A stretch of DNA of 63,712 nucleotides, the filler included, from Sluysia triapertura (taxonomy: Eukaryota), in assembly GCA_046118255.1 (NCBI GenBank). It is 5 parts of 5 records of this genome, joined end to end, with 100 filler letters (N's around TTAATTAATTAA, not from the genome) between each part and the next. Parts side by side here need not be neighbours in the genome. Positions count along the whole stretch, not along the records: positions 1 to 16,216 come from JBJNIA010208256.1; 4 more parts are not named here. One strand, given 5' to 3'. Shown one piece after another: positions 1 through 16,216 of the stretch. Made by a program: the position numbers and the translations under genes. Each line of letters starts with the position of its first letter. Within the stretch, counting starts at the first letter, position 1. The notes beneath the pieces are model-generated. The model was not told the origin of the DNA. It did not search any database and worked only from the letters and a program-made list of their open reading frames with translations.

Positions 1-1934
1 ATTATTCTTCGTTAGCATGTACCACATCAATACAATCACCAAATCTCATCATAAATACATTACTTTCAACTTTTCTCAGATTTTTAAGATTAGAATTTAT
101 AGCACTAGATAGTATCATAGAATTTTTATAATACATTGCGAAATAAGTTTTTAAACTTATATCTAACATTTATTAATCTAAAAAATGAGATGACAAAAAT
201 TCTATTTATTATTTCTAACGTTTGCTCCAATGAAATATTAATTTGCATCTATTATCGCAAATTCACTTTATAGTGGCTAATATTGATGACATTAATGGCT
301 TAAATATAATGAAGATATGAAGGCTAAATTAAATTAAATTAAATTAAATTATTTATTTATTATTATTATTAAAATTATTATTATTATTATTAATGTTATA
401 ATTCATACTGCTATAGGTTTGAGTAAAGCAAAGTTCTTTCTGAAGAGAACGTCTTCTTTTTCAAATAGTTAAAAAAATAAATATAACTAATTTGCAGGAA
501 ACTTTAACAATTAATTCAATAATCTGATATATTTGTTTGGAAATTTTGACTGTTAACTTAATGAAATTTGTATTTATGTATTTTAAAAATTTAATAAATT
601 TCAAAACAAAAACTTAAGGTTGACGCCTTTGATGAATATGAAAAATTTGACAATGAACAAGTTAACTAAACAAACAACATGTTTAATGAGTAAAAGAAAA
701 AGAATAAAAATAATATATGCGTGAGTAAACATTAAGGCTGAATATTGCTGTCAAATAGTGACTGCATTTCCTACATATGTTGGAGTTTCATCATACTAAG
801 TTACGTCATAAAAACTAACTTTATATTGTATTTTCATAAACATTAATTATGGATATATATCTATAATAGTTTTGAAACTTTTCGTAATTAAAATTTGTAA
901 GAAACACATAAATATATGTAACTTAGATATTACGAAATATTCATTGATTAAAAATTAATTTTTTATTATCATTTTTATATTTTATAATTTCAGATGAATA
1001 TAATCAGTGTCTCGTTTGAAGCTTTTATTCAACTTCGCGTTCGTACATTAGTAATTATGAGCAACCGTGTTTTGTGGCCAACTGTTGTTTATATAAGAAT
1101 TTATAGATACTTAAATATATTATTATATTTCATCGACTTAAAATTTTATAATGCATATTCGGTTATTTATAATATATTTATAATATAATAAAATTTATAA
1201 TATATTCGGTTATTTTTTAATTATTTCAATATATATTAATAATGAATGTATTTCTCAGATACATTTAACCTCCGCATAGTTAGTATAATTATAATAAATT
1301 ATGTAAAATTATGAAATTGTGCCATTCTAATTCATGAAAACAATTATATAAATAAATTTTAATTATTTATACTTTTCTTTGTTGTACCATGATAAGCATT
1401 TATCAAATATTCAGACATACATTCTTGATTAAAATGTAAGTAAATAATTACTATCTGAAAGATAACACAAGACAACAATAGTACGTCTGGACACTATTTA
1501 AAGATAAAAACTCTAAAAGATGTTTTTATATCATAAAAGAATGATTTTTAGTGATATAGTGTAATGAATAAAATATATAAATATTTTGTAATTAAATTTG
1601 TAACACGTTAGTGATAGCGACTGGAGAAGACGATGATAAACTTGCTAGTACATTAACAACATTGACCTTGAGCTAGTACGAAAATTTATTGTTGATATAT
1701 TATTATTTGCAATTATGGGAGTACCCAAACCATCAACTAAATTGGTTATGAGAGATGTAGTAGATGATGGTGATGCAGTTAGTGGATGAAGTGAATCCAT
1801 GGCAAGGGGCATATCAATAAAAATAACAGAATTCTGGGATTAAGTTTTATATTTGTTTTTATTATTGTAATTATTATTATGAATTGTGATAAGCACTTAT
1901 CACGAAACAACTGTACATGCTTATCGTTCATATT

Positions 1935-2093
1935 AAAACAATAGTTCAGTTTATCATGTGATTCTTTTTGCAGTAAATTAGTTTTTTAATATTGTCTTAT
2001 TGATAGACTCATTTTGTCGTATGACATTTTTTCATTATTTTTACTGAAACCCCAAATTCGTTCAACTTCAGTGGGATTTTTGATTGAGTGTCC
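1935..2093 (-). pseudogene. ETS-domain transcription factor, C-terminal half of the DNA-binding domain, disabled
   Basis: Manual translation after a TAG acceptor gives GHSIKNPTEVERIWGFSKNNEKMSYDKMSLSIRQY*KTNLLQKESHDKLNYCF, matching ETS WG..KN...M.YDK.SR..R.YY. In-frame TAA at 1986-1988; first Arg of RxxR replaced by Leu. Confidence 0.75.
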
Positions 2094-2220
2094 CTAGGTT
2101 TTCGGCAACCTAGGTTTAGGTTTATCATCACATCTTTTGATTTTATTGGTTTTGTAGTGATTGTTATTTATAAAACTGGGTTTCCTAATGCTAAAATTGG
2201 TGGGATTTATATTACAAATA

Positions 2221-2715
2221 TTAGATATGCTTGTAATAGGTGGTATAACATTTGGTGATGTGTTGAGGAGTATGATGATGATGGCTGTTATTTTGTGACT
2301 GTTGTTGCTGTTGATGATGTTCCAATGATGATAAACGTTGAATTTGATTTATATTTCTTAATACTGATTCTTTCTTATTGTTATAATTTTGTAATTTGAC
2401 ATATTCCGGATCTACTAGTACAACTCCATCAACGACAATTATCACCAAAATGACCACTTTTTGTTCAAAATAATCTCTCGTAATACCAGATAAAAAAGCA
2501 TTTATTGTTCAAATATACTAGATGTGGCTTTCATTTCCATTTGCCTTTGTGATATTTGCATTAATGTCGTAATATGCTTGATGCAAGCATTTTACTTTTT
2601 CATATAAGTTGCTTAAATCCAAAATTATATCTAAATTCATAGGAGAACCCAAACATGTTATTAAAGTTACACCAAATAATGATTAAGTGACGAGGGATTC
2701 TTCACTATTAAACCA
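2221..2715 (-). pseudogene. Q/H-rich low-complexity coding remnant, probably the upstream part of the ETS pseudogene
   Basis: ORF 2221..2457 (HHQQQQQSQNNSHHHH) plus upstream coding-like frame with stops (FNSEESLVT*SLFGVTLITCLGS...), same strand as and adjacent to the ETS segment. Confidence 0.35.
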
Positions 2716-3545
2716 AAACAAATCTAGCATTTAACTTTTAATGGCTTATTACTTCTAAGAGATGAAGATTATAGAAATATTAATAAAATTTTAAGAACTG
2801 GATAATAATAGTGATAAGACACGAGAAACAATAAACATGTGTACAAAATAAACACACATACATAAAGAGAGTAAACGGAGAAAACAATGTGACAACAATA
2901 AAAGTTATAATGACAACGATTATAAAATAGGAGTAATATAACAGAATTATTAAGAGAATTATTATTGTGATAGAAATTATGATAACAATAAACGTAAGTT
3001 ATGATAATTATACATTATGACTGTGTTTATGTTTTGAATGAATCCATTACTTTAAAAATAATTCTTTAGAACATTTTATAATTCTTAAATCTTCAAAAAT
3101 CCTAAACACAAAATTTCATAACATCAAAATCATATTCAACATTGAAAGCCATAAAAATACACTTTAAAAATTAATTCAAAACATTTTAAATTCAATATAT
3201 CACACTTTACCTATTATACTGTGAGAAATCAATTGTTAACTGTCCAAACTGTGGATAATTTACTTTATTGTGTAAATTTATTATTTACTTTATTATGATT
3301 ATGATTTATTTTACATTTATTATTGTTCTGTAAATTTATTTAGTTATTATTTACTGTATTATGATTTTTTATTTATTATAAAAAATTATTATTATAAAGA
3401 AATATATTTAAAAAAATCATTAAAAGAAATATATTTAAAAATCATTAAAAATCATTATTTCTTAATATTTAAAAACTAATATTTATAAATTTTGTTTAAT
3501 TAAAGTAAATTAATTATGTGTCAATTTTTCAAAATAACAAACAAC

Positions 3546-4179
3546 ATGGCCGTTGAAAGAAAATTGTGTATAAAAGTCACTGACTTTGCAGATTTATCAC
3601 AATTTTATTTTAATAGCCAGTTGGTAATTAATCTTCAAAATCTTCCACCAGATATCAATGAAAGTGGTAAGTTTTTATTTATTAAGTTGTATGACCTTCT
3701 CACCGTAAAAAGGGAGAAGTAAATTTTTACTTAAACTATTTTTAACTTTGCTTATACCGTAAACGGATAAGTAAAAATCAGTCTAAAATAATAAAACTAA
3801 ATTCTTCGGAATTTAAGTTGAATAAAATCATTATCTGTAACATAAATTCCTTCGAATATTTTGTGTTGAATTATAATTTTGAGTATTCTTTGTGGTAAAT
3901 AAAACTTTCTTTACTTAAAATTTGTTTTGGAATTATTATTAAAATCATTGTCAAACGCTAGACCGTAACAAGGCTAGCTTAATATTATAAAATTTACATC
4001 ATAGTTTTCAATAATTAGACCGTAAACGGCTAATTTAATATTTCATTAACAAGTTAGACCGTAAAAAGGCTAACTCAAAATCAGTTAAATTTATTGTCAA
4101 TTCTAACATTCTAAAATTCTCTTTAGGTGATCCTTATCTTAACACTTGTTCATTTCTATTTTTGCATAGTAAATCCTAA
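3546..4179 (+). CDS. Putative small two-exon ORF (3546-3666 + 4127-4179, 57 aa), unknown product
   Basis: ATG in AACATGG context; donor G|GTAAGT at 3667; branch-like TTCTAAC at 4101; pyrimidine tract and TAG acceptor at 4126; spliced frame MAVERKLCIKV...DINESGDPYLNTCSFLFLHSKS*. Confidence 0.35.
3696..4075 (+). repeat. Array of five structurally conserved hairpins (stem-A-CC-GTAA(N2-3)-GG-stem)
   Basis: Units at 3696-3719, 3750-3772, 3957-3978, 4013-4035 and 4052-4075; lower stems differ in sequence but remain paired. Confidence 0.85.
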
Positions 4180-4277
4180 CAGGCCGCCGTCGTTCAGACT
4201 TAAGTCGTTTTTGTTAGGCGAACTCTCTCCAGGTTTATTTGCAACGTAGGTTAGGTGAAACTACATCTTTGCAAATT

Positions 4278-4303
4278 TGGTGCCCAGAAAGAGGAATTGA
4301 ACC
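4278..4303 (+). promoter_or_regulatory. Primer-binding-site-like motif (complement of a tRNA 3' end including CCA)
   Basis: TGGTGCCCAGAAAGAGGAATTGAACC is the reverse complement of GGTTCAATTCCTCTTTCTGGGCACCA (T-loop, T/acceptor 3' strand, CCA). Confidence 0.6.
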
Positions 4304-4324
4304 CTTCACTCTGCAAAAAATTTT

Positions 4325-6190
4325 GTTCTTGGTCGGACTCAATCCGTGACTATCGGGGCAAGAAAATAATATATTTTAAACAACATAAAAGTGTACAAAC
4401 ATAGAATAGATACATATATATCCACAAAAGTGGGAGTTTTAAAACTCTATAGATATGAATAAATTAAAAATGTTTTTAGGATCACAAGAGGTTAATTTTT
4501 ATTTATCAAATGTTCGCTGATTCTGTTTCATCGATTAATGCCACATTGTTTTCTTCTGAACTTCTTTCTTTTTAGCTTATATCTGCATCGTCGATATATG
4601 TTTCATTTATATCTGTTTCATTGATACCTGCTTCATGTGTATCTGCTCCGTTAGTTTCAATTTCATTATCACCATTGTCGAGGAATATACCATTATTGTG
4701 CACATTATAGATTCCGCAACTATCCGCAATAGATTTAATTATACATTCCTTCTTTATCTTTTCGATTACTGCCAAAGAGAAACCAAGTAATTTCAGGATA
4801 TTGTTGTTTTTAGGATGCCAAGTGTCCAATGATCCCACGCAAATTTATCGAGAAATACTGCCCAGTTTGGTTTTATGGATGTAATTTCATTGACAAGATT
4901 TTGATATTTTGTCTCGTTGAGAGTTCGAGAAAGATTCATAATGGTCGCTTCATCATAAGGTGTTTTGACATCGATAAGGATACATTTGTTCTTTGAATCT
5001 GATATTAATTGTATGTCCACTCTCAACATACTTGAGCTGAATTCGCATATTCTGTCTATAATAACTTGGAAGTGGTGCAGATTTAATAGATTTAATAGAT
5101 TCAATCATATCTGAGCTGTTGATACAATGATTCAGAATATGAGCTTGTGATTCAGGCCATAATTTGCATTTTTGACAAATTCTATCATTATAATCTTTTT
5201 CAGCTCTGTCGTTAACTGGAAGAGAGGTAGTTAGGGCTCTGTGGATGAATGCCCATTGATAATATCGAAGATTTCCATGGCAGAGAATTGTTGTTGATGT
5301 TCTGGAACTTGATATTGATGTTGCTCATTTTCCAGCAAGCTTTTGTACTGACCATTTATAAAAGTAATGTACTAAAATACTGACTCAATGTTTCACCTAC
5401 TTTATTTTTATATTTAGAGGTTATTAATTTTGAGGCTATAATATTTGATGTTTTGTTATTAAATTGTAACTTTAAACAAATACCTAATTCTAATTTAACA
5501 AAATTTAAGGCAATTAAAAAGTTGCGATTTAAATAGAAAATACTGTTCCTGACCCTACACCACCAAAGGGAAATATGTCATGTTCTTGACCAGAATTAGG
5601 CCATTCGAGTGGATCTGGAATTTCATAATTATATGGCAAATGAGAGTGTCGTGATGAAGTATTTAAAAGTCCTTGAAAGGCAAGTTTGGCAACATTTTCG
5701 TCATCACAAACTAACATTCGGAATGCAAAAATGATTGAATTTACTGCACAATCATCCCTGGCTGAGATTAAGCCAACTCCACCTTTTGATATTGGAGAAT
5801 AAAGGTAATTATTAGTTGCATAGTGTGGTAGCTTGAGAATTCCTTTAATTAGTTTACGTATTTTTGCATCATATCCAGGTTGTTTGATATATTGATCAGT
5901 GCGATTTTTGAATCCACGACTAAATAGCATGTCAATGTGGAATCATGATGTTCTCATTGTAAATTGTAGACGAGAGTGTATAAATGTTTTATATACATCT
6001 ATCATTTGCCATGGTTTATGTCCACTTTTAGAGATTTTATCAAAATCTTGAATAGCTCTTTCAGTAACTCTTTTGGATCGTGCTTTTGGAAATGACCAAA
6101 ATGTACTCCCAAGTATTTGTATGAATCCTTAGATATTATTGGAATTTGGTTTTCATAAATAATAGGAACAGACTGATCCAATAAATTCAG
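4325..6190 (-). mobile_element. 5'-truncated, decayed non-LTR retrotransposon with restriction-like endonuclease (Utopia/NeSL-like, R2 group)
   Basis: RT C-terminus YKYLGV, KPWQMIDVYKTF, LPHYATNNYLYSPISKGGVGL; WAFIHRA; CCHC knuckle CQKC...ESQAHILNHC; RLE motifs RVDIQL...ILIDVKTPYD...KY..L; several stops and frameshifts. The 3' boundary is approximate. Confidence 0.85.
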
Positions 6191-6279
6191 AAACTTTTGT
6201 AGTTTCGATATGTAGTACTTTATATGTTTTAATAGTTAAACTATTTTCGATTTATTCCATTATCCCATTTTTGATTTAC

Positions 6280-6800
6280 TCATAATATAATGTAGTACTA
6301 AATTTAAAATAATTCGAGTATTGATCTTCATAAATTTCTAACTTTTCGGAATCTTTTAGCCACTGACTCAATTTCGATTCTGCAATTTTAGGTTTAATTT
6401 CACTGATAGGTTTAGCACCAAAATAAGCATCAACTTCTTCGTCTGTCATGGTTCTTGGCCATTTAAATTTTGACTTTCACTTTCTTTCAGACGATTTTCT
6501 TGCACTGTCATCTTCATTCATATTAACTGCGCCTCTAAAATTACAACTATTAAACTTATAGTAAAATGGCACTTCTCCAGAAGTAGAGAGTGCTAAAGAT
6601 GATTGCGACGTGTAAGAATCACATACATAATCTCGATTGTCCATATCAAATTTCGGAAAATAATGATTTATAAGAATAAAATCTAATCTAACCAACGCTT
6701 TCAGATTTATTTCATAAAAATTCATAACACTATCACTTTTATCCATAGGATTTATCCTATCTGTAGGGAATCGTCTAAACAATTCAAACTTGGTTTTGTT
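6280..6800 (-). pseudogene. Disrupted ORF of unknown identity (~170 aa)
   Basis: ORF 6477..6782 continues in frame past one TGA as KSKFKWPRTMTDEEVDAYFGAKPISEIKPKIAESKLSQWLKDSEKLEIYEDQYSNYFKF. Confidence 0.35.
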
Positions 6801-6879
6801 GTCACAGTTTTAACAGGTAATGCTTTAAAATTCGTCATTTGAATTCTATTATTTAAATAAAAATATTTTGCTTCGACCT

Positions 6880-7379
6880 TCCAGAAAATAATAATAGTAA
6901 TACACAAAGAAAATAATAATAATAAATTAAAAATAAAATTAAAAATATTAATAAAAATAATAGTGAAAATAATAAAAATAATAATAAAAATGAAAATGAA
7001 ATTAAAAATATTAATAAAAATGATTAAAAACCACGATGAACCACTCCAAAATCGCAACCCTGGCAAAAACAATAGTGAACATTCACAACTACATGTAATA
7101 CCGGGGTAGCGATGTATCCGTTTGATGTGACAGCAAAAGTAGGGCAATGACGCGGTTTCGGTACTAACAAATCATGTGACGCGTGTTTGACTTCCCAATA
7201 TGTACTATTGATTCGACATAAAGTTGAAATTTTAGTTGTGGTTTTATTATTTTAGGTCTCATAGCCTATGAATTTCAGTTTTAATTGTTATGATTTCATG
7301 TTCGTGAGTCTGTGTTTGGGTATGAACGTTTATGTATGCGACGAGAAATAAAGGAGTCTGATAAGTGTTGAACACTACA
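6880..7379 (+). mobile_element. Possible 3' end of an LTR retrotransposon (low-complexity tail plus ~275-bp LTR)
   Basis: A-rich repeats followed by a PR*TT..RNP-like post-integrase tail; candidate LTR 7105-7379 bounded by (G)GTAGCG...CACTACA with AATAAA near 7347. Confidence 0.35.
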
Positions 7380-7927
7380 GTTAAATTTTAATTTAATGAT
7401 TCTGAAAAGATAATTATCTTTACATAATTAAAATTGGACATAGGTGGAAATTACTGCTCAAATTTAATCATTAATCTATAAACACAAGTGGTCAATATGG
7501 CGTTGAGCACGGTAAGTATGCGACGTCGACTGCACAAAAGTAAAGGTCGTAAATTTCAAGTGACTTTGCGAGCAATTTACTTTCTGTTCTCTTGGCAGCA
7601 GCATTATTTGGAATTAAGGCTATCAAAGTCAAATATGCAATCGTGTATTGCACTAGTAATTCTAACTAAAAGTTTTAATTAAGTCCTTGAAATCAAAGAT
7701 AAAGATTTATCAAATGGAACAAATTTTTCTATAGTGTACAAATAGTGTATATATTTCCATGTATATTAATGATTTTTTTAAATTGCAGTAGATTATTTAT
7801 AAAATATTATGGCAGTAACAACCAAAGCAAAATAAAAAAATAAAAACCATAACTTCATTTAAAATGTCTTAGATTCAATTTCCAAAGATTAAAGTGTTTA
7901 AGAAATCATACAAGAATAGCTTTATTA

Positions 7928-9138
7928 AAGGGTTATGCATTAATATATTTTAAATTATGCAAAATAAATTTAAAATTACGCAATGATATATTTAAATTTA
8001 TGAAATAATTTATTTAGTATATAAATAAAATTTAATGGCAACAAATCATTTTATAATTATATTTTTGATGTAAAATTTAAAACTGAAATTTGTTTTTTAA
8101 AATTGAATATAATATTTTTAATCAAATTTTTAATCACTTAAAATATTAGATGAATTCTTGTCTGCTTAATGCCTTTTCAGTTCATCTCCTCATATTCAGG
8201 TATTTCATTTCTAATTATTTCTGCTATTTTATTTTTTATTTAGTGAGGTTGATAAAATACTGATAATTTGGATTTGATACAGCTACATAATTCAATTAGG
8301 TTAAGCTGAGGGGAATATGATGGAAGGAATTTGTAAGCTATGCTTTTTTATCTTAATAAATTTATTACATCGTTTTTATGATGAAATTTGCAGTTATCCA
8401 TTATTAAAACGTCATTTTAAATATTTGAAAATGAGGTACAAGTTTTATATTGTTAAATTCAAAAAAAATCGTCATTAAATGTCCCATCTTTTATTTCAAA
8501 TGTAATGGTTCCGAAATTTTTATAGAAATAATGCAGCTTATGTTTGTACCAATGATTCATTTTATTATTTTGAATTACTGCATTTTTTGGAGAATAACCA
8601 TAGTTTCTTACTTGGTGTAAGTTAATACCAGTCTCATCCAAGAAAAATAAAGAAGAATTTTCAACGTGTTAGATTGATCTGGCATAAATCTGCCTTGTTA
8701 GAGTTTTGTTTAAATAGAATTTTAACTAGCCTTTTCCTTGTGAATTCTATAGTCTTGAGGATTCTTGAAACTGTACTTTGAGTAATGTTCAAATTCAAAC
8801 CCAAACCAACTCATTTTGACTGTAGTAATGAGAAGTAATGAGGAGATCTTGCTTTTTATTTCGGATCTTGGTAAGGGTTTTCTCCCTCTCTTCGCTCCCA
8901 TTATCCCATTCATCACTTATATTATCTGCCACTTTCGCAATTATGTTGTACACTGAGATTACTTTAGCTGAACAATCTTTATCAAACATCTTGCGTATTA
9001 TTCTTAATGACTCTGCAGTGATTGTCTTTTTTCTTGCTCTCTCATGAATATTTTCATCTTATAAGTTTAATTCTTCTTCCATGGAAAAATTTAATAAATT
9101 TTTTACAATTAATTTTAAATTTATTTTGCACAACCCTG
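7928..9138 (-). mobile_element. Tc1/IS630-like DD34E transposon, full-length but decayed
   Basis: FLDETGINLH..YGYSP; MDN followed by 34 residues to E in FLPSYSPQLNLIE; TIR TA|CAGGGTTGTGCAAAATAAATTTAAAATT at 9138 and an interrupted copy TA|AAGGGTTATGCA...AAATAAATTTAAAATT at 7928. Confidence 0.85.
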
Positions 9139-12100
9139 TAACAAATCTCATTGTTGGAATACTTATAAATTACCATTAATCTTATAATTTGTAAGTTTCC
9201 ATGAATTTTAAATAAAGCGTAAAATCAACATAAAATCGTTTTTTTAAATAGGCTAGGGAAATATTTTTAACATTATTGTAGATTTGATTTAAATAACTTT
9301 TAAAATCCGTACATTTGTTAAAAATATTCATTTGTTCTAAAGTAATATCCTTTAAAACCTCATTTTAAATAAAGGCGTAAATTCTAGGGTATTATAAAAT
9401 ATTTGAAATTCCACAAAATCTAATTACCTTTTGAACTCTAATTTTAAGTTCATACACAAATTTATTATTTTATGACTTAAATAATTGACTTCCATTTTTT
9501 TGCAAAGTCATGTGAATAAACCAATTAAGCTTTTATTTATGATCGTACGTTGTCTTCTTTNNNNNNNNNNNNNNNNNNNNNNNNNNNNNNNNNNNNNNNN
9601 NNNNNNNNNNNNNNNNNNNNNNNNNNNNNNNNNNNNNNNNNNNNNNNNNNNNNNNNNNNNNNNNNNNNNNNNNNNNNNNNNNNNNNNNNNNNNNNNNNNN
9701 NNNNNNNNNNNNNNNNNNNNNNNNNNNNNNNNNNNNNAATTCTAAACTTTATAAAATTTTTAATTTCTTTAACTTTATAATCGATAGCTTTTAATTTACT
9801 CGAATTGTCAGAATACTTTCACAAATGTCGAATCATTTTAAAACCTTAATATACATAGTCCGTAAAGTGTGAAATCGCAATTATAATTCATCTCTGATGT
9901 TAGAGATGAAATTGTAAATAAATCTTTAAACGTTTTTGTCGAAGTTTCAATAAAGAATTAAGAAAAATACGAAAATAACTAAAACATATTTCAACACTTT
10001 TAATACAACACAAATTATACCACAGTATAACCATAGACAGTACTTTTGTTATCATCCACTTACATAAATTCACACAAATTTCACCCACAAATATTTCCTC
10101 CACATCATTTCATTACATCAAGTGCAAACTATAAGTCTAAAATAAAAAATTACTATTAAAATCGTATTAATAGAAAGATCGCTTTCTTCGTTCTCATCAA
10201 CATTATTACGAAGAACACTTTTAGAACTCTTCGAATAGTAAATTATTCAGTTATTCAGCAAGTAATTCGAGATTTAGAGGTCCAATATAAATAAAATTAA
10301 AGGGAAAAAATTTTAATTCCTTAAATTCAATATTGTATGTAACAAGAAAATTGTTGACAATTATTATTTACCACTCTATAAATCTGATTATTCAAATGAA
10401 AGTGAAGATTATCATTTAAAAGAAAAGATTTTAACATATTTAAACATCAGCTATTAATTCATCAACTCCAATAATGTTTATGTTCAAATTTGACACAATT
10501 GTCTGATTGACAGTTTCTCGTTTTGGCATTGAAAGCAATTTCGAACTTATAATTTGGAAATAAGGAATCACAAGTTAAAACAGAAAATGGAGAGGAAAAC
10601 TTTAGCGGAACAAATTAAACGTTTCACAAAAAGAGGAATATTAAAAAATTTATACAGAAATGAAAATAAGAAATTATTGAATTAGAATTTTAGGCACGTT
10701 TATCAAATTAAGAAGCTCGAGATAATGATAATTATTTACCAAGATTTATTATGATTTATTCAAACTTTTAAATATATAAATATCAAATTGGAACTTAATC
10801 TTATAGTTTTAAAAGAGGTTTAATACTTAATAACGTAAATATTGATGATTCTGAGCAATATATTTGTGTATAGAATTAGAAAATATCTTAATGTTACTTT
10901 TTTGAAGTCATTTATTATTAGAATAGATTATAATAATAATTCAACCTTTGAGTACAGCAGTTTTCTTCCCAAGCACGCTATATCGGTCTACTTTTGTGAT
11001 GCACATCCTGGACATTTTTAACATTTGTACATTAATTTTAAATTTTATTGATAATATTATTACTTTTATCTGTTCTTCTAGTTTAATAGGAATTTGTTTT
11101 CATTTCTGTGCCTTAAGAAGATTTTTGACGATTTAATTTTTGATTTTTTTATTAAGATAGTTTTAATAAAGTCAAAATTGATCTTAAGTCCGGAATTAGT
11201 ATTCACTTAAATAAAGTCCAAATTTTTAAAGATAATTTAATAAGTAAACATAAAATGCCTGACATATGGCCATCTCCAATATAATATAAATATAAAATTG
11301 GTCCATTTTGTTTAAATAAGATCGTAAATAAAATCTCTTACATTAATTTCATTCAAAAGTATTTAAATTAGCTATAAAACTACACAACCCTCAAAAACTT
11401 TTATTGTTAACATCACCTTTAAGGAAAAAAACTTTCTTTTTAACCTTCATATTAAAATTTTCTTAACATCATACGGACAATCCGTAAAACGTAAGACTAG
11501 GATCGTAGGTGAATTCATGTATATTATAAACAATTTTATTGTTTACATATTATAAAAATTCAATAACAATAATAATTTCTTTTGCCATTAATTCTTCCTT
11601 AAGTAAGAATTTTACGTATATTTCTGTTTTTTATTGTTGTTATATCAACTTAACTTTAATCTGATTGCTTCAAACTTAATTTTGCTTTTGTATTTCATAT
11701 TTGAACTTTGTATCATTAATTTGCTCACTGTAACAAAAATTGTGCAACGACCTTTTAATTACGATAAATATGGACCTTTTAATTACGAAAAATGTGCTAT
11801 TTAATGCAAGGCATTCCGAAAAAGTATAAAATTATTAAACTTACAAAAAAGTAAACATTTAGGAAAACAGTATGTTGCAAATCTGCAAAGCTTTTATTAT
11901 TCTAATATTAATATAATGAATAATTGCATAATTGTTAAAGACTAACAGTGTGTTTAGTAACTTAATTGTTTTCTAATTCAACTTGCTTTTATCTTTATGT
12001 TTCAAACAATTTGACTAACCAATAAAATTGCATTTATTGTTTTTCAAAATAGCAAATTTTATTTAATATTTTTTTGCTAAGAAAATTAATTTTTAATAAT

Positions 12101-14252
12101 AATTTAGTTTATTTGTTTCGAAATAATTTTTAATTTAATTATCGTTAATGATCATTCAATATATTTCCTAAACAAATATTATAAACAATAAACGAAAATT
12201 ATTTGTATTATAAATGCAACATTTATTTTTGTAAACATTGAAATAATTAAAGTGTTTTGGTAAACCTTTAAAAAATTTAATTTGTTATCTCGTTAATTAA
12301 ATTTTATCTCCCAATTTGTAACTATTGTTTTTAAATTAATATTGTTTTGAATTTTTAACTTTTCTTATTAAAACTTTTTATACAAATTGTAATAATATGA
12401 AGCATTATGTATTTTAAAATGTTTTATTAAATATTTTCTTATATTTTACATGTCATTATTTTATTATCGAATATTTTGTTTATATATTTAATATTAAAAA
12501 ATAATTTTAACAAATTTTATCTAATTTAATTAATTAAATTTTTATAAATATTTTATTAGCGTAATAAAACTATTCCCTAATTATATTAATATTATATTCA
12601 TTTCATAAAATATTATTTATAAATTAAACATGTAATAATAATAATAATAATAAAGTTAAGATACCGAATAAAATATTCAATTAGCAAATATTAATATTAA
12701 TGTATAAAATTTGAAATTAAATTTTTTTAGTTTTCTTAACAAAACAATAAAAATATATTAAAATAATATTACGTTTTAATAATAATAAATATTATTGTAT
12801 TAATTTATATAATATCTAAACAAAAATGTTCATCTTTCATCGTAATCAGTATTTTTTTCTTGACTTGTTCGACTACAATCCATGTTAAGTATCTACGTGA
12901 ATAAGATGCTCAAAACATTTACTGTGTGAATAAATAATTCCAAGTAATGCTTTAATATCTTAGAAAATAATGTATTTAATCTATTCAAGTAATATTACAT
13001 TATTAATAAATTCAATCAGAATAAATTAATCAGAATGTTTACAGTCAATATATAAAAGAATGAGTTAGCAAAAAAACGAATTGACAATTAAAGTTATTGA
13101 ACTTTAATCTTTTTAAATTTTAGTTATTAAACTTTAAGATTCCCTTATGAAATCGATGAACGTACAATAAATGAACAAAAATATTGAATCTAAAGATATA
13201 ATAATTTTCACTTGAAAACACTGAATTAATTCCAATAAATAATGTATGACAATTTTATTTGGTTTTGCCCAAAATCATTCTTAATTTTCTTTCTGGTAAA
13301 TAAAGAGAAACATATTAATATTATTATTACCATTATTTCCTTCATTGTGTTCACGAGTTATGATTTTCTAGTACTACTTTATTATAAGATTTGTTACTAT
13401 TATTGTATTTACAATTATTATGATTGAGACTATTATGGAAGAACGAAATAATATTTCTGGAACAAAAAGATTAAATACATACTTTAAAATATTCCAGTGA
13501 TTAGACATTCTCTGGTAGCTCTTTGCATACTTTTAAAACATCTATCTATATCTTATTATAATACGTTTTATATGAAGTTTTAAAAATGTAGAATATTATC
13601 ATTCAAAACTTCCGTAAAAAATCATTTACACATTATTATCATGATTTTGAATTATAATTATGATTTTATTGATAGTCAATATAATTCGTTAAAATAAGGT
13701 GCACTATAAGATCTCCTTTTGAATTTAAAATTATTCATTTATTTAATTTTTTAATATATTTAATAAGGTAATTAAAATCATTACTGATATTATAATTTAA
13801 CCCCAATTTTTGTAAAATTACGTATAAATAAATTAGACATAAAATAAAATAATTAATATATTGTAAATTAATGGTTTAAATCTTTTAATTTTTGTATATT
13901 TTATTATTTTTTATCTATATTTTTAATTTTGTACATTTTAATAAAATAAAATTTAACAAATAATTTAATAGAATTAATTTGTTAAAATAAATCAATTTTT
14001 GTTTTTATTGGAATTAATATTCAATATGGTTACCAAAATTTCACTATAAATAGATAGCGAAATTTAGAAGCCATTGACACAAAAGGTAAAAATTACAATC
14101 AGCATTGGATAATAACAATTTGCAATAAATTTTCGGTATCAACAAAAATCAATTCCAAGTCATGCTGCGAGAATTTTTTCATCTTTAAGTAAGATTATAT
14201 TATAAGTTCTGAAATTCTCACTTTAATCCGACTTAAAATTACAATTTTTGTA

Positions 14253-14625
14253 ACTTAAACATTAAAGGCTAAGTCAATCTTAAAGTTAAACTAAAAAGTA
14301 CTAAGAAAGTATACTTCTGTGTGGTTCAAATTGTTTATTATTATTACATTAGTTTTTTGTTTGATATTAAATTTTGACTATTGAATTTACATTGTTAATG
14401 TTGTATTTTAATAAAATTTAAATTGATGCTTAGTTATTTTTACGATTTGCGACCTTAAGAAGGCTAGTTTAATGTGTAAGTCTTAAATTAATTAAAAATC
14501 AATCAAACTGCACGCTAAACCTTAATGGCTAGCTCAATCTTTTGTATAAACTAAACTATAACGGCTAGTTCAATTTATAAGATAAACTGATTGCATAAAC
14601 TGCGACTATGTGACCGTATAAGTTA
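14253..14625 (+). repeat. Second, decayed array of the same bulged-A hairpin motif
   Basis: ACTTAA-A-CA-TTAAA-GG-CTAAGT (14253), GACCTTAAGAAGGCTAG (14451), GCTAA-A-CC-TTAAT-GG-CTAGC (14514), AACTAA-A-CT-ATAAC-GG-CTAGTT (14549), GACCGTATAAG (~14612). Confidence 0.6.
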
Positions 14626-15879
14626 TACATAGAAGAATATATAGGAATATATGAATATAAAAATGCATATAATTTATATATAAGAATATAATTAAAATCA
14701 TAATAAGACGTCTCCCAAGTAGATATAAACCGTACTTATTAGTTGTCGTGATTCAACTAATCATTAAAAGTTTTATACCACATTATTCATACATAAAACA
14801 GTAATTAACCGTTTAAACAATATCTACATTTTAGCCAAACAATCAATTTAAATGTATCCAACACAACACATTAAGCTCTATAAGTTATAACATAAATTCC
14901 TAAATTTGACATCTCTTGTAAAAATAACAACACCTCTCACTTTTATTTCTGCAACTTGTTTCTTTTTTAAAAAAAACGTTTAAAGAATTTTTAGATAAAA
15001 ATTATTTTGAAAATTTCATTTTTGCAAAAAATTATTTTATTCAATTGTTGTTTCATTTCGTTAATTAAATGTTCCATTTAATTATAAAATTTATGTAAAG
15101 AAATCTAATCTACAAGCTTTTACCAGATAATAAAACTGTGACACCTTCTACTTCATATTTTCGCACAAATACGTCATTCATGTTCTTTCTTTGTTCGAGA
15201 CATCACATTTTGAAGAAAATTTCCTATAACTGTTATACTATCATTGTGGCTCCGGAATATTCCCATTTGACCACCTTATTTCTATCAAATCCTCTCTTTT
15301 ATTGATTATTAAGGTTTATAATATGCCTATTTTTCGATTACCAAAGGCAAACAAATTTAAAACTATTTTTCTTCATCAAATCATATAATCATGTAATTCA
15401 AACTCATGTAATACCTCAATATATTTTGCAAGGATAAGTTTGATTCTTACGTAGTAAAAGCACATTGAAAATTTAAATATCAATTTAGAATTTGTGTTTA
15501 AATATTATCCCTAAAAATATTTAATAAACTATCTATATAAAATATATAATAAAATATATAATATGAAATATTAAAAGCTTCTATCTAAACTGGATTTAGA
15601 TTCACAAATTTCTCTAAAGATTACTATTTACTAAAGATTACTAAAAATTACCATTTCACTATTTTGTTGTAACAAAAATCACTAAATATTCAAATTTCAA
15701 ATGCAATTTACTAGAAATTAATTATTATTTAATTAGTTCATTAAATTTCATTTTTTACTGATGTTTTATTAAATAGGTTTCTTTTTTAATTAATTTGGAA
15801 TTTTTAATTATGCTAAGAATTATAAAAAACATTAATGTTATTCGAAAAGGTAGATAAATGATAATAATATTATAAATGT

Positions 15880-16216
15880 AGTGTCCAACACTCACAACTT
15901 AAAAATTTATTAAAACATTACATTCAACATCCATAACTCAAAAGTTCACTAAAATATAAATTTCTAAACAATTACACTCCTAACTATCGAACTACACCAA
16001 CTCAATCACCATAAATAACACTCGACATTTATAACATCTATTAACACATATGTAGTGGCCAACTCCGTAAATCAAAATTTAAATTAACTAAATTAAAATA
16101 AAATTCAGTACAATCACACTCTGCAACCACAACCACCATACAATTCATCACATAAAATAACAATACTCACAACTACTACCTTAACACTTCACCAAACTAC
16201 ATCTGACAATAAATTA
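15880..16216 (+). mobile_element. C/A-skewed LINE (CR1/L2-like) 3' fragment
   Basis: Shares sequence with 55790-56240 (ACTATCGAA...ACCATAAA...ACATTT(T)ATAA...AACACATA...AACCACAACCAC). Confidence 0.45.

Follow-up and report, generated by a model that had tools for sequence, protein, structure and literature searches.

Five short hairpins, each with a single bulged base and an invariant core, form an array at positions 3667-4126 of the window (the whole stretch of Sluysia triapertura DNA that was analysed, 63,712 nucleotides with filler included), and the pattern that they make is real and far beyond chance. An asymmetric core that is perfectly kept, stems that change in pairs and flanks that have drifted together indicate that the hairpin and its core are under constraint, now or recently. 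This constraint could act at the array 1 locus itself or in a master copy. The interpretation toward which we lean, while giving it somewhat less than an even chance, is that the five hairpins are a repeat or mobile-element hairpin site that would be read as single-stranded nucleic acid by a protein. We favor it because unrelated flanks carry the unit, one of its two arrays is decaying, and the surroundings are element remnants without a supported gene.

Architecture of the hairpin array

The five hairpins described in the first-pass annotation are all present, with their invariant core and with outer stems that differ from unit to unit yet remain paired (CTTCTC/GAGAAG, GCTTAT/ATAAGT, GCTAG/CTAGC, AATTAG/CTAATT, AGTTAG/CTAACT). 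The features of the array are as follows, with covariance model scores in bits and energies from single-unit folds.

3667-4126: array 1 in full, a degenerate tandem repeat with start-to-start spacings of 54, 207, 56 and 39 nt
3696-3719: hairpin unit U1, 6-bp lower stem, motif as written on the + strand (39.8 bits; -10.0 kcal/mol, z -3.2)
3750-3772: hairpin unit U2 (35.9 bits; -9.2 kcal/mol, z -4.1)
3957-3978: hairpin unit U3, 5-bp lower stem (38.0 bits; -9.5 kcal/mol)
4013-4035: hairpin unit U4 (37.8 bits; -7.1 kcal/mol, z -3.7)
4052-4075: hairpin unit U5 (41.3 bits; -8.0 kcal/mol, z -4.4)
3799-3814: hairpin of another type located in the long (184-nt) spacer; its 6-bp stem is A/T-rich and its loop is TTCG (-4.3 kcal/mol, z -6.2)
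3846-3857: weak tandem sister of the 3799-3814 hairpin (-0.4 kcal/mol, not significant)

In U1, a single A is bulged (T on the opposite strand), the clamp consists of two C:G pairs and the loop has 7 nt. In U2, a terminal G.T pair closes the lower stem, and the clamp can be extended to 3 bp, leaving a 4-nt loop. A 3-bp clamp with a 4-nt loop is also possible in U4, whose 6-bp lower stem consists of A/T pairs except for one G:C. U5 differs from U4 by one base pair, which is altered on both sides. Folded singly, each of the five units gives the expected hairpin (-7.1 to -10.0 kcal/mol, z -3.2 to -4.4), and a fold of the whole 460 nt keeps all five on either strand. The hairpins are 41% GC and the spacers 18.5%.

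Core invariance and paired stem changes

The core pattern ACCGTAA N2-4 GG was found five times, in each case on the + strand and within array 1, against an expectation of 0.05, and none of 200 shuffles reached this count. In the five-unit alignment, 97.5% of the cells of the proposed helix are paired; six of its eight pairs are altered on both sides, and the two clamp pairs are invariant. On none of five measures did any of 500 shuffles equal the real array. Sliding the 3' partner by 1-3 columns lowered pairing to 17-52%. Within array 1, identity between units is 100% over the nine positions of the core (ACCGTAA and GG), 44% in the arms and 36-49% in the flanks, with 32% expected by chance. 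The stem differences had originally been proposed to reflect covariation, and this proposal is upheld: the paired changes exceed those of all 500 shuffles on the five units and also on nine, when the units of a second array are included.

The spacers had been described as unrelated and up to 184 nt long. One spacer is indeed of that length, but the spacers are not wholly unrelated. A 9-mer, AAAATCAGT, is common to the 3' flanks of U2 and U5, an 8-mer, TTAATATT, is common to the 3' flanks of U3 and U4, and a T-run lies upstream of most units. Given these shared motifs and a flank identity above chance (36-49% versus 32%), we consider array 1 to be a degenerate tandem repeat.

A second, decayed array in unrelated flanks

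A related array with the same orientation as array 1 was detected 10.2 kb downstream.

14253-14570, + strand: array 2, decayed, four units with spacings of 194, 67 and 35 nt
14253-14274, + strand: array 2 unit
~14447-14469, + strand: array 2 unit
14514-14533, + strand: array 2 unit
14549-14570, + strand: array 2 unit

Array 2 was recovered twice, once by a covariance model built from U1-U5 (10.9-15.6 bits, all on the + strand) and once by a sequence profile (nhmmer, E 1e-4 to 2e-6). Its core is mutated in all four units. The outer stems are mostly still paired and differ between units, and an identical change of the innermost stem pair is found in three of them. When all nine units are aligned, 90% of cells are paired and 13 cells are changed on both sides, a result that none of 500 shuffles matched. 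One array 2 unit, V2, is a clear homologue of U3, with stem type and flank in common, which implies that unit types have been copied between loci. Compared with each other, arrays 1 and 2 have no shared flank sequence and no collinearity beyond the hairpin units. The presence of the unit in two unrelated flanks identifies it as a dispersed tandem repeat family, and uniqueness of the array to the first locus is contradicted by this second, decayed array. Spacing is similar in the two arrays, with one long gap followed by close units (207/56/39 versus 194/67/35); with only three intervals in each, this resemblance is at most suggestive.

Searches with the covariance model and nhmmer revealed no convincing further units elsewhere in the window. 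A possible third array at 260-335, consisting of three GGCTAA/GGCTTAA motifs, was rejected as unsupported (nhmmer E>5). No relatives of the hairpin were found outside the window in the metagenome contigs, prokaryote genomes or viral contigs searched. The single-unit pattern matched 33 loci in metagenome contigs, once each, and we regard these matches as chance because none is AT-rich, none lies in an array and several fall inside a conserved bacterial gene. The two-unit pattern matched once among 185,579 prokaryote genomes, in a coding region, which was also taken as chance, and gave 0 matches in viral contigs. Around the arrays we were unable to define any termini of an element, target-site duplications or inverted repeats in the flanks. 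We also considered whether arrays 1 and 2 might be an LTR pair or the two ends of a transposon, and rejected this arrangement, as they have the same orientation and unrelated flanks and share the units alone.

AT-rich tandem repeats with periods of 12, 25 and 58 and about 10% GC occupy 3258-3489, directly 5' of a putative exon. A 9-mer, AAAATCATT, recurs in them, and near-identical versions of it occur in the spacers of array 1 and array 2.

The two arrays together bear on a neutral explanation, which we judge unlikely: a functionless palindromic minisatellite whose stems would be made or restored in the DNA itself, by template switching during replication or by repair in an extruded hairpin, and whose perfect cores would reflect recent amplification. 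A single template-switching event can produce both perfect stems and compensatory changes of several bases (PMC8794818, PMC5453318). Array 2 shows that units decay when left alone, and the two strands pair equally, as those of a DNA palindrome would. Recent amplification, however, predicts similar stems and spacers, whereas the arms are 44% and the flanks 36-49% identical beside a core at 100%. A/T mutational bias should moreover erode a GC-rich core first, and the hairpins have kept 41% GC against 18.5% in the spacers. Finally, the asymmetric bulged base is present in 5/5 units, although copying from arm to arm would tend to erase it.

Strand, splicing signals and Rfam

Counting Watson-Crick and wobble pairs over the units gave 65/72 on the + strand and 64/72 on the minus strand. 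The units of array 1 fold slightly better on the + strand and those of array 2 better on the minus strand; for the array 1 region as a whole, the fold z-score is -3.5 on the + strand versus -2.2 on the minus strand. The first-pass annotation had favored the + strand as the RNA on the basis of one G-U pair, the terminal pair of U2. This preference was not borne out by the near-equal counts (65/72 versus 64/72) or by array 2, which favors the minus strand. The U2 pair does not decide the strand, because three A.C pairs in array 2 become G.U pairs on the opposite strand. Equal pairing on both strands shows neither an RNA form nor that the + strand is the acting strand.

Several motifs are more frequent on the + strand than on the minus strand (GTAAGT, 7 versus 2; CCGTAA, 9 versus 0; GGCTAR, 10 versus 3). 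This bias may reflect a long + strand transcription unit or merely the orientation of the repeat family.

Array 1 had been placed within an intron. The signals on which that placement relied are present, with GTAAGT at 3667 and CTAAC...TTTAG ending at 4126, where the branch-like CTAAC motif lies ~22 nt upstream of the AG at 4125-4126. Coding support for the exons, the other part of the claim, is absent. For the putative exon at 3504-3719 we found no Pfam family, no exact protein record and no homologue among proteins of comparable length. Its frame continues past the proposed donor, and the donor-phase frame 3' of 4127 is open only to 4176 (a single-frame piece). Splice-like motifs are frequent on the + strand of the 16 kb (seven GTAAGT and six CTAAC..YAG), so the signals are compatible with an intron but carry little weight.

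Whether the hairpins belong to a known Rfam family had also been raised, and none was matched. With Rfam 15, the sole match in the whole window at E<=1 was a chance miRNA elsewhere, and at E<=10 the region 3600-4600 gave four matches of 15-17 bits, compared to thresholds of 49-66, and no family. With no Rfam match and a real array, a candidate protein-binding or structured nucleic-acid array is still viable.

These observations can be set against a model in which array 1 is a multivalent RNA platform in a + strand intron or long non-coding transcript, bound by an RNA-binding protein and acting before splicing, a model that we consider distinctly improbable. Selection on an RNA site predicts an invariant core beside stems that change in pairs, as seen here, and donor, branch-like CTAAC and acceptor motifs bracket the array. 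The unusually stable + strand fold of the region (z -3.5 versus -2.2 on the minus strand) and the slightly better + strand folds of the array 1 units are in keeping with such a transcript, as is the location of both arrays and most GTAAGT motifs on the + strand. Against this, pairing is equal on the two strands and array 2 folds better on the minus strand, the bracketing motifs are common in the region, and the flanking 'exons' have no family or homologue and, downstream, a very short frame. The existence of a second array, decayed and in unrelated flanks, also argues against an RNA platform.

Mobile-element remnants around the array

Array 1 and array 2 both lie in the part of the window at positions 1-16216, which looks like repeat-rich nuclear DNA of an AT-rich eukaryote and not like human DNA. 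Its GC content is 15-33%, and CpG dinucleotides are not depleted (observed/expected 0.92). It contains no tRNA gene detected by ARAGORN, no Rfam family and no standard-code open frame longer than 139 codons. Ciliate and other genetic codes were tried and rejected, as they gave no coherent long frames. Two element remnants were recognized within it.

4554-6181 (outer bounds, possibly to ~7250), minus strand: non-LTR reverse-transcriptase homology
~8462-9058, minus strand: probable Tc1/mariner transposase remnant (DDE_3 19.6 bits, below the Pfam cut-off; more than one frame)

The homology at 4554-6181 covers only the C-terminal third to half of reverse-transcriptase proteins. It falls into four or more stretches in three reading frames, which implies at least two frameshifts in addition to in-frame stops, and the N-terminal part is missing or unrecognizable. 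A relative of this remnant matches solved R2 proteins better than L1 ORF2p (E 2e-43 versus 4e-28) and has no AP-endonuclease domain, from which we take the remnant to be R2-like. Its relatives, the only proteins recovered by an exhaustive profile search, are distant reverse transcriptases with at most 45% identity, and come from contigs of 42-53% GC without the hairpin motif. Protein word searches with the LINE piece and the Tc1 piece gave no match, and an exact protein look-up of two open reading frames of the window returned no record. The R2-like and Tc1/mariner remnants together suggest a mobile-element graveyard rather than a gene.

Other features of this part of the window include an (AAT)n-like low-complexity run at 6885-7021, which lies just upstream, on the minus strand, of the reverse-transcriptase homology and inside its possible extension to ~7250. 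An assembly gap of 177 bases occupies 9561-9737. On the minus strand, ~1650-2700 is a gene-like stretch of 29% GC with strong GC skew and a His/Gln-rich run; it has no Pfam match and could be a host gene or pseudogene.

The first-pass annotation had also suggested that the array lies in the LTR or leader of a retroelement. We found no long direct repeat of 3300-4500 in the window and no second LTR, which speaks against this suggestion. Nor does a retroelement on the + strand fit the data: no gag/pol domain was detected in + strand pieces, and the sole reverse-transcriptase homology is that of the minus-strand, R2-like non-LTR remnant. The supposed PBS-like motif also looks doubtful on closer reading, since its TGG at 4278 opens an antisense tRNA-like sequence of ~82 nt with its own acceptor pairing. 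This sequence, at 4278-4359 on the minus strand, ends in CCA, pairs at 6/7 acceptor positions and has a weak antisense-tRNA-like Rfam match; neither ARAGORN nor the Rfam tRNA model called it. By its sequence, the site at 4278 appears to be a complete antisense sequence of tRNA origin and not a PBS; it could represent a retro-copy derived from a tRNA or the head of a SINE.

The region 4127-4360 forms a GC island (41.5% GC in surroundings of 18-24%). As a candidate structured RNA, 4127-4365 was rejected, with fold z-scores of -0.7 and +0.3 and no Rfam match.

The proximity of a non-LTR remnant raises the further, very doubtful, explanation that array 1 is a pile-up of stringent-type LINE/SINE 3' tails, in which each unit would be a reverse-transcriptase recognition hairpin with a short tail, left by severely 5'-truncated copies inserted repeatedly at one site; in a minus-strand version, these could be tails of the adjacent R2-like element. 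Stringent LINEs use as their 3' tail signal bulged hairpins whose stem sequence is free to vary (PMC1636434, PMC4176376). Read along the minus strand, on which the remnant lies, its protein homology stops at ~4554 and the array follows downstream. The relatives of the remnant match R2 proteins, and the tRNA-like sequence, a possible SINE head, lies between array 1 and the remnant. The array nevertheless starts ~480 nt beyond the point where the protein homology stops, the GC island intervenes, and the 3' region of the element itself contains no unit. Beside array 2, no reverse-transcriptase homology was seen. Tails of a single family should have common stems, and related elements elsewhere come from contigs of 42-53% GC that lack the motif. 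A comparably small probability falls to explanations beyond those considered here.

Comparison with known systems

The kinds of element that the arrays most resemble are Helentron-borne short arrays, LINE 3' tail hairpins and bacterial REPs. Non-autonomous elements are known to carry short dispersed arrays (PMC7492417, PMC4067079), and enzymes of mobile elements are known to recognize bulged hairpins (PMC1636434, PMC4176376). Non-autonomous Helentrons of the HINE / DINE-1 type resemble the present case in their few-unit short tandem arrays, unrelated flanks, small palindromes and T-rich surroundings (PMC7492417, PMC4067079). Short tandem arrays dispersed in unrelated flanks, a Helentron trait, are represented here by two arrays 10.2 kb apart. 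In contrast to Helentrons, the units are much shorter and each is itself a palindrome. Around the arrays, no subterminal inverted repeats, no 3' palindrome with a T-run boundary and no Rep/helicase gene were identified. A search for Helitron-type ends, either 5' TC and 3' CTRR with a hairpin ~11 nt from the end or subterminal inverted repeats with a 3' palindrome, gave only weak AT-rich inverted repeats flanking the arrays and no clear ends; the CTAG/CTAA of most units is part of the 3' arm and is not spaced after the hairpin.

The 3' tail of stringent LINEs and SINEs, exemplified by eel UnaL2, is also a single-bulge hairpin in which geometry and a few loop and bulge residues matter, rather than stem sequence (PMC1636434, PMC4176376), and it is likewise a cis-site for a mobile-element enzyme. 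That tail, however, has a lone hairpin at the very 3' terminus of each copy, with short tail repeats after it, whereas at least five stand in a row here, and array 1 lies hundreds of bases from the nearest reverse-transcriptase remnant. Bacterial REP elements and clusters are 20-40-nt imperfect palindromes with a conserved tag that occur singly or clustered; a dedicated enzyme recognizes them in single-stranded hairpin form, and their stems vary between subfamilies (PMC3733652). They differ in the position of the conserved part, which is a 5' tetranucleotide in REPs and the loop, clamp and bulge here. A REP/RAYT system proper was rejected: the context is like that of a eukaryotic nuclear genome, with non-LTR and Tc1/mariner remnants at 20-30% GC and neither tRNA genes nor bacterial ones, and there is no HUH-type gene in the window.

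Likenesses to several protein-bound sites are more general. The operator hairpins of MS2 and PP7 combine a short upper stem and a conserved loop with a lower stem that varies and a single unpaired base on the 5' side, and the 3'UTR of the transferrin receptor carries five iron-responsive elements as a multi-hairpin mRNA array. The present hairpins are like the MS2 and PP7 operators in architecture only, and like the iron-responsive element array in having several tandem copies. They differ from all three in that the likeness is one of architecture, with no Rfam match, and in that the RNA form and the binding protein are putative here. In hAT and CACTA transposons, clusters of transposase-binding motifs are subterminal; the sites are double-stranded and need no flanking complementarity, and the clusters adjoin the terminal inverted repeats of the two ends, with opposite orientations. 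Those clusters and the array both contain many copies of a short motif, irregularly spaced over a few hundred bp, but neither terminal inverted repeats nor ends in opposite orientation were seen here.

A model for the hairpin family

In the reading that we prefer, a repeat or mobile-element hairpin site, the hairpins would belong to a family of short, dispersed tandem arrays whose basic unit measures roughly 35-57 bp. The carrier would be a satellite-like or non-autonomous mobile element, situated in eukaryotic DNA that is AT-rich, full of transposons and poor in genes. The 22-24-nt imperfect palindrome of the unit could extrude as a hairpin on either strand when the DNA is single-stranded or transcribed. 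The surface read by the protein would then consist of the unpaired base, the 2-3-bp G:C clamp and the loop, which is A-rich on one strand and T-rich on the other. If the lower stem is needed only as a helix, its sequence would drift through paired changes. Adjacent sites would allow multivalent binding. Arrays with a perfect core, such as array 1, might still serve the family or be young copies of a master, and dead copies, such as array 2, would decay. We infer that the hairpin is read by a protein, that single-stranded DNA or RNA is the form read, and that its role is in the propagation or maintenance of the family itself rather than in a host gene.

Several observations run counter to this model. 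No termini of an element could be delimited, and the two arrays are the only copies that were found. A perfect core with drifted spacers fits purifying selection at the array 1 locus equally well, as a host function predicts. In addition, both arrays and 7/9 GTAAGT motifs are on the + strand, which could indicate one long + strand transcript. A more specific possibility, to which we assign a low probability, is that the hairpin is the site of a dedicated protein, either as a natural multivalent RNA-protein platform in a long + strand transcript, akin to an array of coat-protein operators, or as a eukaryotic counterpart of REPs read as single-stranded DNA; in either case, the family would be an undescribed one.

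At present, the array stands as a well-supported structural motif. If it proved instead to be a locus-specific transcript element, it would represent a new structured RNA. If the family is abundant and the core is kept in old copies, the unit would be a clean natural recognition hairpin of an AT-rich eukaryote, with bulge, clamp and loop conserved and the stem free to vary. It would then be useful for annotating AT-rich genomes and would provide an example of structure-level constraint in repeats.
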